NCBI GenBank assembly: GCA_964304625.1
Contig: OZ199838.1
Coordinates: forward strand, 5,934,443 to 5,998,442
Reading direction: 5' to 3'
From: Kudoa neothunni
Lineage: Eukaryota; Animalia; Cnidaria
DNA: 64,000 nucleotides
In this document: one piece after another, positions 1 to 26,578 of the stretch
Layout of the letters: every line of letters begins with the position of its first letter
Numbering within the stretch: position 1 is the stretch's first letter
Made by a program: the position numbers and the translations under genes
The notes under the pieces: model-generated
Databases searched by the model: none
Told to the model about the DNA's origin: nothing
Seen by the model: the letters and a program-made list of their open reading frames with translations, nothing else

Positions 1-602
1 CTTTGCTAGGCACCAAACCTTCAAAAATCACATCTATATCTTCTTCGTTTATATCGTCGTCGTCATCCAACCCAATGATCGAAGCAACACCAAAAGGGTC
101 ACCGGCTGAGGCTGGTATTGTTGTTAGATCAGCAAAAATATCATCTATTGGAACAGTCAACGGGAGTGGATTGTTGAAAGATGTGGTCGACAAATTTGAT
201 TGAAATGAAGGTTGATTTACGTTTTCATTAGGGAGAGAGGGAGCTAAACAATATCAAAACTTTTATTCCAAGTGAAGAATATTAATAATACCATTACGTG
301 TGGCTAAGCATTCTTTGAGAAAGAAAACACTATCGTCGTTATCATCGCTACCACAAACATTTTCAAAATTACCGGTTGATATTCCGTTAACAGCGGTTCC
401 ATTATCTATTAGAACAAAAACCAACTTATTAATTCTTATTATGCTAGTTTATCATGGCGATAGACTACACAAAAAGCTTCTAACCTCGATCGGATGTATT
501 TTTATCCGTGAAAGAACCACCGAGTAAACTATTATTAGTTGATGTAGACACAGGCTGGTTAAGTTGAGTATTTTTTCTGTTGGATTTCATCTTATCATCC
601 AT
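1..602 (-). CDS. 5' part of a spliced gene of unknown function (Ser/Asn/Asp-rich N-terminus), runs off the window edge
   Basis: ATG at 602; exons 602-485, 405-292, 243-1 joined by GT-AG introns of 79 and 48 nt stay in frame: MDDKMKSNRK...DNGTAVNG...APSLPNENV...DDDDDINEEDIDVIFEGLVPSK. Confidence 0.7.
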
Positions 603-5178: not shown

Positions 5179-6670
5179 AAAAAACTATACCTACTTGGAT
5201 ATAATGATCCATGCCAATACCCACGGCCTCTAAAATATTTAATTGGACATGCATACACAAATTTAAAATTTAAATTTACCTTTCCAATCTCATCTGCCTA
5301 AAATTTTGGATGAAAAATTTGGGTGTCCACTTTAGCTAGAGAAGATATCATATGTAGCATGTGAAAACGCACCTTAATTTAGAATTTAATATTTTGATTT
5401 GCTAAATAAATCTTTAACGAAACAATTGTCAAGTTCTCAGTGTTTATATCTAAGGTTAGTCCCGCCACTTTATCGAACAATTACGAATAATGAAACTTAA
5501 TCGTTGGTACCGATACCATGTTTCGTCCTTTATGAAAATGAGATTTTGATTGCCTAATTTTTGGGTTGTACATTTTCCAATAATCCCAAAACATGTACCA
5601 ATTACCCTCAACAAATTATTATCTATTAATTAAAGAATTATTTTGAATATATTAAGGAGAAAAGTGATTTTGCAACTATTCTCGAATAATTATATTCTAA
5701 TGACTAGAAGCTAATTATTGAGTATGCAGTGGGTTTAATTTTCTCAACAAAATTTTTTGTACAACGATGATGCCTAATGAATTTAATGAAATAAGTAAAA
5801 TTTTTTAGCTGTAGAGGTGGATTTTTTGATAAATTTAGGCCTATAATAGATTTTTTCTATTATATGTAAGCGAAATATATAAGGATATGACAAAACAAAA
5901 TAATTTTTGTTAAGGTCAAATATATACGAAATTGATTAATTCGAATAATACTTAATAGCGAGTTCGGCAATTTTATCAATTGTTTTGAGTCCAAAAATTG
6001 TCTGTTACCAAGGTAACACTAATTTTTATTTTAAAAATATTTCCTCACAGTTAATTGACGTCGCTTAGTTCAGATTATATTCTATTGAAATAAATTATTA
6101 AAAACTTACTTTACTAATTTAAAATTTGTTCACTTACGTAACAGTAGGAACCTAAAGGATTTATTCGAGTTAATTTCAATTTACTAGATCCTCAAACCAT
6201 AAAAATATGATTTCAGCCGCTTATTATTATCACAATTTATTGCACACCGGGCGAAACATCACAAAATTGTAAATTTACTAGGCAATATTCCATTTCAAAT
6301 GGTTAGAAACAGGCATAAGCCATGTTAATACTCACTTCGAATTAAATGACATTTATGTGTAAGCAAAATAATTGCTCCCACTCACTCAGACAGACCACGA
6401 CAATCAGAATGTATTTTTTTTCTCAAATCGATACGAAAACGATCTATAATTTACCATGGAAATAAATTGAGGAAAATTTATAATTATGTGAATTATACTA
6501 GATGGTGATTTTGAACTTTTAGATATTTTTACAAGCGCGAGAATTTATTGGCCTATTTTACATTAACTTCAAATGATAGATGATAGGTAAAATAAGATTA
6601 AGATGCGGCACCAATTAATACGATAAAATCAAAACAAACAACAAAAACTACAAATTAATATGGCACAATG

Positions 6671-7712
6671 TCATGATATCGCTGGAAAATTTTTCAGATA
6701 TTTTTTACAATGAGATTTGAGAATATAGGTTTCAGAATCGCGTAAAACTTTACAAAAATGTTTGCAGTGTTTAAGCTTAGATTCAAGATAATTTTTCCAG
6801 TTGCCGGCCACCTCTAGGAATGGAGTCAAATAGGGCGCGACGTTGGTACTACCAACTATGACACTATGACCGCGCGAGAGAAGATAATGTGGTCCAAAAT
6901 GAGAAAACGACTCATTGAAACAAACTTGCAAATTTTCAACTCGCGTAGATTCATATTTGGGCGCCACCTCCACTCCTTCGCTTGTGAACGACTCGCTGGT
7001 AAGTGATTCCACAGGAGCAGTTATAAATCGACCATATGATACAGAAGCAGGCAGCGAAGAACCCAGAATAAAAATAAAACGATTGTTATGTTTGGGGCAG
7101 TTGGAACTGATATCGTCGCACAATTTATTGAACATTATATCAGTTTCCGATTTGATTTCATTGTAATTGGTGTACGTTTTGCAGAAAAGTACTTTGCCAT
7201 TACAACTAGCGATAAGCATGTAAACTTTGGTCTTTTCAAATTGGAATGATCTACTTACGAGATCAAATTCAGAATTGTCACATTGACTACGTATAGCAGG
7301 TTGATTTCTATCAAATCGAGTTATCGAAACTTGGAGAACATCAACAATAATGCTATGTCGTTTGCAAAATTTTTTATCTTGGAGCAATTCTCTTGGTATG
7401 TTGCAGTACCTATACCGATTAAAGAGAAGGCGGTAGTGAGATCGAGTTTTAAATCCACTGAAATAGATACTTTAATTTTTTGGGTTCTTGATCATACGAA
7501 AAACAAAGATCATAGTTGACTGCAACTCTCACTTTGATATAATTGAAATAGTCGATCAGTGTCTTTCTTTCAATGGATTTATTGAAATGAGCTCGAAACT
7601 TTTGTTGTACACACTCCAAACTGATACACTCACTAAATGTGGTTATCATTCCAAGAAATGTGAGCTCCTGTTCTCTGAGATGAAGACGATAGCGAAGATA
7701 CAAAGAAGGCAT
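6671..7712 (-). CDS. Intact two-exon gene encoding a catalytically degenerate IS630/Tc1-transposase-derived protein (~333 aa)
   Basis: Exons 7712-7498 and 7457-6671 are joined by a 40-nt GTATGA..TTTCAG intron (7497-7458), giving a stop-free 1002-nt CDS. The product is colinear with the IS630/Tc1 transposase at 10.6-11.6 kb: HTH, IIVD, FILG, APYLTPFLEVAGNWKNYL. Confidence 0.7.
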
Positions 7713-10466
7713 GACACACCACACTCAGTGCTAATAGTATCGTGCGATTTCAATCGATAATCACTTTTCTAATAAAAAAGGATAGTTAGAATTAATAGGA
7801 TTAAATCCGCTATTTAAATATGACGACGTAACTATTTTTTAGTTGGTGGAACTATTTATTCTAAGAAGGGTTATGCAACTAATTTCACTATAAATAATCA
7901 ATTAGTGCAGTTGACATAACTGATATTATAAAGGCAAGAATCTATTCACTTAATTTAATAAATGTTTTTCTTAATAAATGTAATCATTTAACAAAATTAA
8001 ACCGGCCTCAAAGTCTATAAATACAACTAGCAATAAACATCGGCGAAAACAATTACTCATAAAAATATCATCCGAACAATGATTATTTATTATATTAAAT
8101 AACAACCGCTGATAACCCATTATTAATGTTTTTAAAGTGTAATCAATTTTTCACACAATAGTCTAAGATATACTGGATCCAATCATTACATACATCATTT
8201 GATTAGTTATTATATTTAACGGCGAATCATTGTAATTGATAAAAAATTTATATATGGTTTAGAATGCACATAATAGCTTACTTACTATTTATATTTTGTT
8301 TATCAATGTACCAGTAACTGCAACCCAGAATAAAAATAAATTACTTTAGAAATTAAATCCTTCTATCAGCCACAGATTTCGCGCTGCCACCAAATGATAA
8401 CAAGGATTGATGTATGGACAACACTAATCAACCAAATACTCTTGGTTCTATTCAACTAATAACAATTATAATCATAGATTCCAATTTTTTCAGAACCAAA
8501 TCCAGCTTAGATGGAATGTACAGGTGAGGGGTATTTACCTGGGGATGAATTAGTTATATATCTCGCAGCAATATAAAAAACAATCGATTTAACCTATTTC
8601 TACAGGAGGTGTTAATAACTATGCTATTATTAGCTGAATCACATGTGAAAATGAACCAACAATTTGGGTTTAATTTGTTTGCCGGTTGATCCATTGTTAA
8701 CTCCTCGTGTATACCGCCAATTTTGTACAATCCTTCCTACAACACCCGCTCGATCTCTTATTGATCACTTTATTAAAATTAAGACTATTTCGTGAGTAGG
8801 CGAGCACTGATTCAGTCTTAGTATTAATTGGAACCTGTTTTTGTTAAATGTTAATTTGGAAATTTATTAATGCAATACGTGGCCGTAGTCGTGTTTATAA
8901 TTTTAAATACCCTTAAAAAGCAAAAATAATTTCTATTTTAGTTTTAGCATGACCCTTACGATTTTCCAGTGGAGATTCGCAACCTATTATCTATTTGCAG
9001 TATTCATTTTTTTAAAGTTGTACGTAGTGTAGTAACCTTCCTAGATTATATATAGATAAACACTCCTTTCCTTTGGGAGTAATATCAATAGAAACAGCAA
9101 TTTTGGAACAACTATTACATTTAGCAATTAAAATCATTAGATTCTACTTGAAAATGAACTAAAATAAACAATTTAAACAAATAAGAGATTTGTTGTTTAA
9201 GTTATATGATAATGCAGCTCTTTGCTAGTTTTTCGGTATTGGCGGTGAAGTATCGAGCTCCGATCAGCGAAGCATTAGCTTACTTATATTTTTAATCCTT
9301 CAAAATTCTGCTTTGTTAAATTACTCCTATAGTAACTGCATATGATTTGTTATTTTCCAATCCAACGATGTAAAGGATCATTATCATTAGGAATACGCTC
9401 ACACTTTATTAGCACGATTCAACTACAAAATTCATTGCTAGCAGGTCATATATACGTTTTCACTTAGTAATAAATTTTAAGTTATAAGTGAAGGTAGACG
9501 AATTAAACAGTTTAACTCATTACTATAAAGACCCACTGAGCAAAATTTAAATGTATTTTGTTGTTAGATCAAGCTTAGGCTTAGAATAATGAATTCAATC
9601 ATTCTCCGCGTGGTTTTCGTTTTCTGTAACTGATGCTTGTTTTATCCCGCCAATTCTAATTTGATTCTCTAGCACAACAATAAAAATGGTTGTCGTCGCT
9701 GACGGCATCATTATCGATTTTAGACTATTTTCAGCTCATTATAAATCAGCGCTTCCCAATTCATTTTATTTTCCGGACCCGCTACCACTTCCGAGAACAA
9801 CTCCGCACTCCTTCTCAAAAAAGAGATTTAAAATGGATTTATTTTTCGGTGGGAACAATATTTTGATTAAAATAACATTAAAAAGAAAAAACCGCCTATT
9901 TTAACAAGAAAACAAATGTGAATAAAATAAAAAAATATGATGATAAATTAAATGTTTCGAATTTTTTTTCTTGTATTTTTTGGACAATAATTGGGTAAAA
10001 ATGGGACTCTTTATCAGATAAAGTTATGACTAAATCATAATTTGTAAAGGTACAAGATATGTTAATGTTTTTGTGCAAAATAACAAATGTGAATAGCTGA
10101 GCTTACGCGAAATTTTGCTTTTGTAGTTTTGTTTAACTGTAAATTTAAAAATTCATTGAGGAATTTAAATATGTGACCCAATCTCGAATGCATAGTTTTA
10201 ATTTATAGAATTTTTGATCGCAAATTGACTTTAATTTAAAGTATAAAAATTTTAAATAATTTAACAAACAAATATAAATAACGTAACCCTGACACTAATT
10301 AAAATTTAATTCATACTTGCAATATAGTTTAACTAAAAATAATAAATAATACAATTTTTAATAATTCATCCATTTTTAAATCTTTTATATGTCGTCTATC
10401 TTTCCCATTAAAAAGTAAATACTTCATAATTTTTTGCGTTGTTCCATTTAAAATTTAAACTAAATA

Positions 10467-11807
10467 TAGGGGGTTTTGAGCTTTGGTGACACGTGTGTAG
10501 TTTTAGCTAATAATTAAGTTCATACTATAAATTAATCGAATAAAAATAATAATATGAGTGGTAAAAATTTAGCATAACATGTTAGTTTAATATTTATGAA
10601 CTTTTAATACAGATAGTGACGACGATTATCAAATGACAACTCAAACAAAATTTAAGAGACAAACAATAAGTGACTGAGATAGGGAAAGGATTGCCAAACA
10701 GTGCGAATTGGGTCACGGCGATGCTCTCATTGTTGAAAATGTTGGAATTAAGCGACAAACTGTTGCTTCAATTGTAAAGTCATACGTTCTCGATGGGAAA
10801 ATAAAGCCACTAAAAAGGGTGTGACTCTTCTTCAAAACTCAATGAAAATCAAAAGTAGCTGATTAGAAAATGGGTGGATGAGGAAGCCACCATTACCCTT
10901 AAGACTTTCCGCCTAAAATTGTTAGACAAGTGTGGCGTGAGTGTTAGCACAATAGATAGGTTCTTAAAGAATTTCATTATTCTTTTAAATTGCTCACAAT
11001 TGTTCCTGAACGATGAAACTCTGACGATACAGTGGAAAAAACGTTTTGTGTACGCTCAAGAGTTCAATTCCAAATTGTTTGAGGCAAAATAAAACAACTT
11101 TGTTTTTATTGACGAAGTTGGTTTTAATGTATCGTCACGTACAAGACTGGTCCATTCGCTTGTTGGTACGGTACATCAGCATATGTAAACGTAAAAGCCG
11201 TCAAGTCAAGTAACGTATCCGTCATAGCAGCGATGAATAAGTTTGGCATGGTGCTATATAAAATAAATCGGAGACCAGTAAATGACGAAGATTTTAAAGA
11301 GTTTCTTATTGAAATGGCAGATTTGTGCCGTTCTTTGGAAATTGAAGATCCATGCTTCATACTCGATAATGCAAGGATACATCATTATCGGGGACTTAGC
11401 GAAATTTTAGCGTCATTACAACTAACGTTGATGTACCTACCTCTGTATTAACCCTTCATGAATCCAATTGAGAATGTTTTCAGTAAATGGAAAAACCATG
11501 TTGTGAGAGGACAAGCGAGAAACGAAAACGATCTTTTAAACTTAATAGATGATGGTTTCAAAGTTATTACCACCAATTATTGTTCAAGTCATTATCAAAA
11601 AATGCTTCGATATATCAGCAGATGTTGGAACCGAGAAATTATTCTAAAATAAGTATACATTATACGACGATAATGCTTGAATATCTTTTTCAAATTCCTA
11701 AAATTGTTATTTTTTGTTCATTCGAAACTTAAAGTAATATTTTCGTATTTTTCACCTAATTATATAGCCATCTTAAATATCTTGTCACTAAAACTCGAAA
11801 ACCCCTA
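10467..11807 (+). mobile_element. IS630/Tc1-mariner (DD34E) element, full length, transposase pseudogenised
   Basis: TIRs TAGGGGGTTTTGAGCTTTGGTGACA / TGTCACTAAAACTCGAAAACCCCTA with TA flanks. FVFIDE, FILDNARIHH and NPIENVF give 34 residues between D and E. Stops and frameshifts present; probable intron 10561-10612. Confidence 0.9.
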
Positions 11808-25599: not shown

Positions 25600-26578
25600 T
25601 AAATTTTACGATGTTTGATTACGGAAACTTGAAATTATATTAAATTTTATTTTAAAGGAGTGAAATACAAAGCAGCAGATTGTTGGTGCAGTCAAATACC
25701 ACCCTAGTACTGTTGGTTGAATAATAAAACATTTCGACGCTACATTGTAGTGTTTCTAAAAAAAGACAGATAGAGTTAGACGATCTATTTCAATCCTTGA
25801 ACAAAAACAATTTATACTCGAATTTGTCGATCCTCATTGCACTATCACTTTAAAATCGCTTCAGATGTATTGAAAACCAAATATCAAATAAATGTTTCAA
25901 GGCAAGCCCTAAACAATATTTGGGGAGTTCCCATTACTCTCCAAAAAGAATATTACTAGTTCCCATCGCCCCAAATTCGCCTGAAAACGTAATTAAAAGA
26001 AAAAAGGTTTTTGTTAATTTATTTTTAATCTAAATGTTCTTTATTATGTTTTAAAATCTCTCAACTTAAAGCCAGAGTTATGCTATATTGTTTTCATCGA
26101 TGAGTCGGGATTTTCGCTGTCTATGCGAAAAATATTTTGTCGATCATTAGTTGGAACTAGATCGGACCTAGTGGTTAGTTCTATCTGATCAAAGAATATC
26201 ACTTTGATAGCAGCCGTCTCGTACACCAGACTTTAGACCTTCAAATTATGTGAAGGATGTGTGAATCCGAAAGTTTGTTGGAGTTATATTAATCAAATTT
26301 TCTCTGAATTTGTTGAAAATAACGTTCCAAATTCATTAATAATAATCGACAATGTGAAGTTTCACAAAACTAATGCTGTCGTGAACATTATTAATACGAG
26401 TAGACACAACGTTCTCTTTCCACCATCATATTCCCCCCTCTTAAGTCCCATTGAGGAGTTATTTTGTCAACTTAAATCTATTGTTACGAGTAATAATCAG
26501 CGAAATGAAAATGATTTGATTACATCAATAGAGACATACTTCATTAGATATCTTGATTCTGAAATTATAGAATATTAA
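25600..26578 (+). pseudogene. IS630/Tc1 (DD34E) transposase remnant
   Basis: IVFIDESGF, NITLIAAVS, IIIDNVKFHK, FPPSYSPLLSPIEELF, with stops and frameshifts. Confidence 0.85.

Follow-up and report, generated by a model that had tools for sequence, protein, structure and literature searches.

The genome of the cnidarian parasite Kudoa neothunni contains, on the minus strand and about 7 kb into a stretch of 64,000 nucleotides (GenBank assembly GCA_964304625.1, contig OZ199838.1, forward-strand positions 5,934,443 to 5,998,442; referred to here as the window), a gene that we interpret as a stationary host gene descended from a Tc1/IS630-type transposase (Tc1/mariner superfamily, DDE_3 fold). It has probably lost one of the residues required for cutting DNA and has been kept by selection, and its product is most likely a regulator that binds nucleic acids or acts as a scaffold, without catalysis; we give this interpretation as a whole a probability of about 0.82. 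The ancestry is supported by sequence profiles and by the predicted fold: the first exon appears to keep the second helix–turn–helix (HTH) motif of such transposases, and the second exon an RNase H-like core and a C-terminal P-Y-x-x-P...E...W-K signature (Table 1). A preliminary description of the window, made by reading the DNA, had already proposed a transposase-derived host gene that is unable to cut, and this proposal is supported by profiles, fold, copy number, selection and a glycine, Gly116, at the expected site of the second catalytic aspartate.

To examine the fold, we used an AlphaFold2 model of exon 2 based on a seven-sequence alignment of the gene family (A7) that included no transposase (predicted local distance difference test (pLDDT) score of 67.7, predicted template-modelling (TM) score of 0.68). 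The predicted core consists of strands β1 (exon-2 residues 19–33), β2 (56–69) and β3 (72–79), helix α1 (83–103), strands β4 (112–115) and β5 (182–184) and helices at 187–213 and 218–231, with disordered loops at 35–53 and 126–168; in this model the order of elements, β-β-β-α-β...β-α, is that of an RNase H-like domain. In a Foldseek search of the Protein Data Bank (PDB), listed ranks 1–14 were all catalytic domains of the Tc1/mariner group (Mos1, Metnase/SETMAR and Sleeping Beauty), the best with an expect value (E) of 1.1 × 10−3 and a probability of 1.00. VIA-align, a comparison with 48,161 chains that is independent of Foldseek, also placed Mos1 first (Z = 10.4, 162 residues, root-mean-square deviation of 3.8), followed by Metnase (9.4), a further Mos1 chain (9.3) and Sleeping Beauty (9.1), and then by retroviral integrases (8.9–8.3), Tn5, TnsB and Mu. 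A shape search of the ESM Atlas returned ten rows, nine of which carry DDE_3 or the mariner domain Transposase_1 (TM score by query of 0.49–0.52); in one row DDE_1 is present, but just 16% of the members have it. An initial AlphaFold run restricted to three orthologs gave an unreliable model (pLDDT of 39.7), for which Mos1 nevertheless took the first five places in Foldseek.

At the sequence level, we compared profiles of the gene and its relatives with a profile (A3) of 11 intact Tc1-like transposases (322–366 amino acids) from the same genome, using hhalign. The C-terminal block aligns with its PYSPFLNPIE..W..K counterpart over 49–51 columns at the colinear position (P = 1.2 × 10−3 with three orthologs and 3.9 × 10−4 with four). 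Its score of 31.6 was reached by none of 200 column shuffles (mean 15.0, s.d. 2.7, maximum 24.2), and the reversed profile scored 12.5. The match is degenerate (22% identity), and Tyr193 and Pro196 are invariant across the whole family. Exon 1 aligns with the second HTH of the transposases, with P = 0.01 when only orthologs are used (a score reached by 1 of 200 shuffles) and P = 3.4 × 10−4 when an eight-sequence N-terminal family alignment (A10) is used; in a local run the match covered 84 columns (score 39.1, P = 5.2 × 10−5) and its score was reached by none of 200 shuffles (maximum 23.2). The candidate does not have the approximately 50 N-terminal residues that are present in its paralogs, where the first HTH would sit, and at most one HTH therefore survives. 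For the HTH seen by eye in the preliminary description, BLASTP finds no similarity to the neighbouring Tc1 remnant. Between the two ends, the strongest local match within the N-terminal half of the core is the β2–β3 hairpin, which occupies the colinear position (P = 0.043). The three profile matches (HTH, hairpin and C-terminal block) occur in the right order, with 81 residues between HTH and hairpin (76 in the transposase) and 110 residues between hairpin and C-terminal block versus 59, a difference that we attribute to an insertion of approximately 45 residues. The colinearity with the DD34E copy at 10.6–11.6 kb that had been noted by eye is accordingly significant at the profile and structure level but not in a pairwise BLASTP comparison. 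Separately, a Pfam match of exon 1 to Lig_C (E = 0.033, 14.6 bits versus a cutoff of 25) was read as noise.

We mapped the catalytic residues using the predicted secondary structure and hhalign. Because no part of the N-terminal half of the core matches transposases significantly in sequence, we assigned the first and second aspartates from the predicted model, whose confidence is medium. In that model, the presumed first catalytic residue, Asp23, is retained, as the preliminary description had read it; it is invariant in the four orthologs (counting the window gene), and the position is Asp in one paralog (L040) and Asn in the other three. The second aspartate of the Asp-Asp-Glu (DDE) triad appears to have been replaced by Gly116, a residue that all eight members of the family share. 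No Asp or Glu is present in the window protein between exon-2 residues 100 and 133. The second aspartate would thus be lost whatever the exact register. In DDE enzymes, loss of the second aspartate abolishes two-metal catalysis, and the protein is therefore predicted to be unable to perform two-metal DNA cleavage, in agreement with the earlier reading of an aspartate-to-glycine change. As all five genes of the family in this genome share the glycine, loss of the aspartate probably predates the duplications. The third position is more ambiguous. A change from Glu to Leu had been described, and hhalign indeed sets Leu198 opposite the catalytic glutamate; however, the adjacent Glu199 (Leu198–Glu199 at 6812–6817) is invariant in orthologs, with Gln or Arg at this position in paralogs, and the apparent substitution may be a one-residue register shift. 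The insertion of about 45 residues that had been placed between the second and third catalytic positions is present in the model between β4 and β5, where it is predicted to be disordered (pLDDT < 50) and would stretch the spacing between these positions to approximately 82 residues, versus 34 in DD34E enzymes. In the middle of the otherwise variable insertion sits the motif P-K-x-E-S-T-R-V-E, which is invariant in the four orthologs; in three paralogs, the insertion is shorter and the motif is absent. It may have arisen after domestication as a short interaction motif.

The gene is a stationary host gene, conserved across at least four related genomes, at a fixed locus. Its DNA matches the 40.26-Mb assembly (three large contigs of 17.2, 12.0 and 11.0 Mb, and one small contig) only once, with no dispersed copies flanked by terminal inverted repeats (TIRs), and protein and profile searches return only the gene itself and distant paralogs. 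We found no convincing inverted repeats flanking the gene, as the preliminary description had stated, and the TIR core of the neighbouring Tc1-like element is confined to the two ends of that element (10478–10491 and 11783–11796). With one DNA copy and no TIRs, the locus is a derivative rather than a member of a mobile family. One inverted pair (5712–5747 and 7988–8023, 72% complementary) was considered as a TIR and rejected as a chance match in AT-rich DNA (the G+C content of the window is approximately 30%).

We searched 1.84 billion representatives exhaustively with phmmer, which identified two orthologs, and three word-indexed searches yielded a third: P0001/L004 (74% identity, on a 1.5-kb metagenome scaffold from the ENA), P0002/L005 (48%, on a 9.8-kb Logan contig) and P0003/L030 (44%, on a 1.8-kb Logan contig). 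Counting the K. neothunni assembly, orthologs are thus present in four assemblies. Nucleotide conservation with L004 spans the region from the ATG to the stop codon, and the flanks cannot be aligned. As judged from substitutions, the coding sequence is under strong purifying selection: the ratio of non-synonymous to synonymous substitution rates (dN/dS, Nei–Gojobori) is 0.11–0.13 (0.125 for exon 1 and 0.111 for exon 2), with dS of 0.7–1.35, which is near saturation, and dN of 0.09–0.15 (Fisher tests of non-synonymous versus synonymous differences, P = 1 × 10−8 and 2 × 10−32). These figures are all from the comparison with L004, as dS is saturated for the more distant L005 and L030. Synteny was compared in one relative, L005, the contigs of L004 and L030 being shorter than 2 kb. 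In both L005 and K. neothunni, the gene is followed on the same strand by a gene for a strawberry-notch (SBNO) helicase, with a spacer of approximately 6 kb here versus less than 1 kb in L005. The SBNO gene of K. neothunni, on the minus strand and downstream of the candidate, starts near window position 337 and extends upstream of the window (window 1–337 plus C1:5930500–5934442, L029), and its translated pieces are 50–87% identical to the L005 copy.

Several results weigh against our interpretation. Neither exon of the gene, nor the three orthologs or four paralogs, has a DDE_3 or Transposase_1 match in Pfam, even with the E limit raised to 10, and none of them scores above threshold for any Pfam family; the neighbouring remnant at 11233–11448, used as a control, scores E = 1.8 × 10−8 for DDE_3. 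BLASTP against this Tc1 remnant is not significant, yielding only a stretch around ...WKN... (E = 0.089) and nothing for the FILGSS/FILDNA pair of the preliminary description. A sequence profile search of the PDB returned only noise (TetR chains at E = 0.08), the language-model feature search of the ESM Atlas gave no usable match, and for the N-terminal half of the core neither local nor global hhalign runs produced a significant alignment to transposases. The hhalign probabilities are modest (20–67%) and the query profiles shallow (4–8 sequences). In the structural comparison, integrases (Z = 8.3–8.9) are only about 1–2 units below the Tc1/mariner domains. Asp23 and Glu199 are both invariant in orthologs, so that residual metal binding or some unusual activity is conceivable. 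Finally, three metatranscriptome runs that share the species label contained no reads of this stretch, nor any of the organism, and they are thus no test of expression. The Kudoa genome preprint reports that parasite RNA reads were too few for annotation (bioRxiv 10.1101/2024.11.01.621499).

Two other explanations draw on these results. In the first, the gene is lineage specific and acquired its RNase H-like domain elsewhere, for instance from a retroelement or a Polinton-type integrase, or else the resemblance of its fold to Tc1/mariner reflects no more than a shared general architecture. The blank results of the sequence-family tools and the proximity of integrase cores to the Tc1/mariner range of 9.1–10.4 would fit this explanation, but Tc1/mariner chains align over 161–182 residues versus 127–141 for integrases, Foldseek probabilities for Tc1/mariner domains are 0.8–1.0 with no integrase in the top 50, and the Atlas rows are nearly all DDE_3 or mariner. 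Moreover, no integrase Pfam domain was found in the exons of the gene, and the significant sequence signals are all Tc1 specific (the PYSP-LNPIE-W block and the paired-like HTH), colinear and correctly spaced. We therefore consider another source of the domain very unlikely. In the second, the locus is non-functional: a decaying transposon remnant with an open frame by chance, or an immobilized copy that has not yet decayed. Half of the genome consists of repeats and dead Tc1 copies lie nearby, and the lack of RNA reads would also be expected. Against this, four species, the most distant at 44% identity, share the open frame, the length of the exon and the position of the intron; dS is near saturation next to a low dN, the coding sequence is conserved but the flanking DNA is not, and the gene is a single, syntenic copy. 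Together these make a non-functional locus extremely improbable. We thus retain a transposase-derived host gene as the explanation.

The mechanical list of open reading frames (ORFs) contains two minus-strand fragments, as described earlier (7449–7724, 91 amino acids, and 6671–7387, 238 amino acids). The frame that opens at the ATG at 7712 ends at a stop near 7449, and the second frame runs from approximately 7456 to the TGA. The two ORFs are shifted relative to each other in the window and in L030, but are in the same frame, with one stop between them, in L004 and L005. This variation in frame relation among species is how a real intron would behave. The preliminary description had joined the fragments through a 40-nucleotide intron (7497–7458). 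That intron has GT and AG ends and its removal indeed yields a stop-free frame of 333 codons, and an equivalent of 42 nucleotides also works in L004. However, L005 and L030 (two of the four species) have no GT at the donor position, and the intron would delete a peptide, Y/C-D-x-E-P-x-K-L-K, that is conserved down to the 44% orthologs. A 61-nucleotide intron (7470–7410) has its donor (AA|GT at 7470) two bases past this peptide and its acceptor at 7411–7410, and its equivalent keeps the frame in all four species, with lengths of 61 (window), 51 (L004), 30 (L005) and 35 (L030) nucleotides and an exon 1 of exactly 242 nucleotides in each. Because it keeps both the peptide and the frame where the shorter intron has no donor, we prefer it: the best-supported gene model has two exons and approximately 326 codons, and the 40-nucleotide placement is probably wrong. 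Under this model, the NRYRYC of the preliminary description, which had been compared with KRFVYA, lies mostly inside the 7470–7410 intron. A non-standard genetic code or programmed frameshift at the stop of the first ORF was considered and dropped, since TGA and TAA both end the conserved coding sequence and one intron position fits all four species. The ortholog introns are very short (L004:381–431, L005:1247–1276 and L030:663–697). Short introns and prokaryote-style gene callers explain why public collections hold the gene as two proteins; in L004 and L005, the unspliced frame runs on with a single in-frame stop. The corrected model should be useful for annotation.

Table 1. Features of the gene and positions of its paralogs. 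Positions are those of the window unless a contig is given; residues are numbered within the exon named.
Feature	Position	Strand	Description
Whole gene	6671..7712	minus	Start codon 7710-7712, TGA stop 6671-6673; ~326 amino acids with the 61-nt intron model
Exon 1	7471..7712	minus	242 nt (80 codons + 2 nt); codes for a putative remnant of the transposase DNA-binding head
Best-supported intron	7410..7470	minus	61 nt, GT...AG, phase 2; same sites restore the frame in orthologs
Alternative (earlier) intron	7458..7497	minus	40 nt, GT-AG; less likely, alternative splicing possible
Exon 2	6671..7409	minus	739 nt; codes for a putative degenerate catalytic domain
HTH-like region	7527..7673	minus	Exon-1 residues 14-62; aligned to second (RED-like) HTH of Tc1-type transposases
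RNase H-like (DDE transposase) core	6716..7354	minus	Exon-2 residues 19-231; AlphaFold2 model and structural matches
Asp23	7340..7342	minus	Presumed first catalytic Asp, retained, on β1; position inferred from model strand β1
Gly116	7061..7063	minus	Expected site of second catalytic Asp, right after β4; position inferred from predicted fold
Insertion between β4 and β5	6905..7033	minus	~45 residues (exon-2 residues 126-168); pLDDT <50, predicted disordered
Motif P-K-x-E-S-T-R-V-E	6935-6961	minus	Exon-2 residues 150-158; invariant in four orthologs
C-terminal signature region	6689..6841	minus	Exon-2 residues 190-240; aligned to PYSPFLNPIE..W..K block and last helices of transposases
Paralog (L003/L031/L039)	C2:6766163-6766708		N-terminal ORF, then core ORF
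Paralog (L032/L037)	C2:6772466-6773179		6 kb from the C2:6766163 paralog
Paralog (L033/L038)	C3:9546854-9547492		N-terminal ORF, then core ORF
Paralog (L040/L041)	C2:9432800-9433339		N-terminal ORF, then core ORF

Protein searches and genome searches with a growing profile identified four distant paralogs in the same genome, 16–20% identical to the candidate and laid out in the same way, with an N-terminal ORF of 123–150 amino acids followed by a core ORF of 175–248 amino acids. Genome searches with the profile of this family return only its own five members. The five genes could derive from one ancient domestication marked by the aspartate-to-glycine change and now serve as Kudoa-specific DNA-binding regulators, or in transposon control in a lineage without cytosine methylation, with P-K-x-E-S-T-R-V-E as a recruited interaction site; we regard this fuller scenario as doubtful. 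Elsewhere in the assembly, a single contig end carries a (TAAACC)n array, which is longer than 500 bp (C2:12039536–12040071). For K. neothunni from yellowfin tuna, a preprint describes three chromosomes together with a circular mitochondrial genome, and a single telomere whose unusual motif matches this array (bioRxiv 10.1101/2024.11.01.621499).

The protein is predicted to be mildly basic (pI of approximately 8.8) and to be a non-catalytic nucleic-acid-binding or scaffold protein, in which the surviving HTH, a basic linker and the dead core may bind DNA, possibly as a dimer, and act as a regulator.

The targets of such a regulator might include the resident transposons. Of 436 candidates in the genome, at least 150 scored as DDE_3 matches. 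Both DDE_3 copies scored in the window (~11191–11523 and ~26087–26503) carry stop codons, in line with the preliminary description, which had called every copy in the window full of stops; genome-wide, intact copies exist. These intact Tc1-like elements (L013:759–2281, L020:819–2226 and others among L006–L028) have uninterrupted frames of 322–366 amino acids and inverted repeats of 49–70 nucleotides that are 91–96% complementary, and from these features the family looks recently or currently active. The decayed Tc1-like copy nearest to the gene, at 10467–11796, carries at its two ends a motif corresponding to the inverted repeat of intact L020-family elements, and its DDE_3 match is the one at 11233–11448; the second decayed copy is that at ~26087–26503.

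As a special case of the interpretation that we favour, the protein could repress these elements in trans, by occupying their inverted repeats or by poisoning the transposase dimer. The abundance of intact elements would give such a repressor a target, the candidate has both an HTH and the core through which Tc1/mariner transposases make their dimer contacts, and other means of transposon control would be useful, as genes for cytosine methylation are reported to be absent in myxosporeans (bioRxiv 10.1101/2024.11.01.621499). However, the protein has diverged from every extant transposase beyond recognition by Pfam or BLAST and its first HTH is missing, so that binding to present-day repeats or pairing with present-day transposases is unlikely, and the gene, whose orthologs reach down to 44% identity, is older than the young elements. 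A role in repressing today's Tc1 elements is therefore less likely, and we consider it improbable; a more general non-catalytic regulator remains our preferred interpretation.

Myxozoan genomes are full of fast-evolving orphan genes, and at least one orphan family would on this interpretation be a transposase derivative. Its recognition was achieved only by pooling distant paralogs from the same genome for profile comparison and by structure prediction. The gene also provides a concrete protein with which to study how still-intact Tc1 elements are reused or kept in check by a parasite that has no DNA methylation. Both MULE domestication and expansion of Tc1-IS630-Pogo repeats have been reported in myxozoans (bioRxiv 10.64898/2026.02.11.705288). 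We found no published report of the family described here; as an instance of transposase domestication, the gene is a solid one but has precedents.

Active Tc1/mariner transposases, including Mos1 (PDB 4mdb and 3hos), Sleeping Beauty (5cr4) and the DD34E enzymes of the same genome (A3, for example L009 and L020), share with the candidate the β1-β2-β3-α1-β4-...-β5-α order, the C-terminal P-Y-x-P...E...W-K block and an upstream paired-like HTH. Unlike these active elements, the candidate has no TIRs and no DDE_3 score in Pfam, is single copy and syntenic, contains an intron and has a glycine in place of the second aspartate. A close analogue is SETMAR/Metnase of primates (3k9j, 3k9k and 3f2k), which derives from the mariner element Hsmar1 and ranks second among the structural matches (Z = 9.4 over 161 aligned residues); in both, a transposase of the Tc1/mariner superfamily has become a fixed host gene that retains the RNase H-like core but has an altered triad. 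SETMAR is fused to a SET methyltransferase and has lost neither of the two HTH motifs; its DDN triad retains some nuclease activity, and it is still recognized by the Pfam model Transposase_1. The candidate, unlike SETMAR, stands alone, lacks the first HTH and the second aspartate, has the insertion of approximately 45 residues and is invisible to Pfam. Host genes derived from pogo (CENP-B, Abp1/Cbh of fission yeast, TIGD and POGZ) represent repeated domestications within the same superfamily into non-catalytic DNA-binding proteins (PMC4231638). They differ from the candidate in belonging to another clade (pogo, with DDE_1 and a CENP-B-type head) and in having known functions, and we detected no relation between them and the candidate, DDE_1 being confined to the single Atlas row mentioned above. 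In view of SETMAR and the pogo-derived genes, the earlier statement that domestication is rarely reported for this clade was overstated. The gene adds a Tc1-type example to the known domesticated transposases, most of which come from pogo, mariner (SETMAR), hAT, piggyBac and, in myxozoans, MULE.

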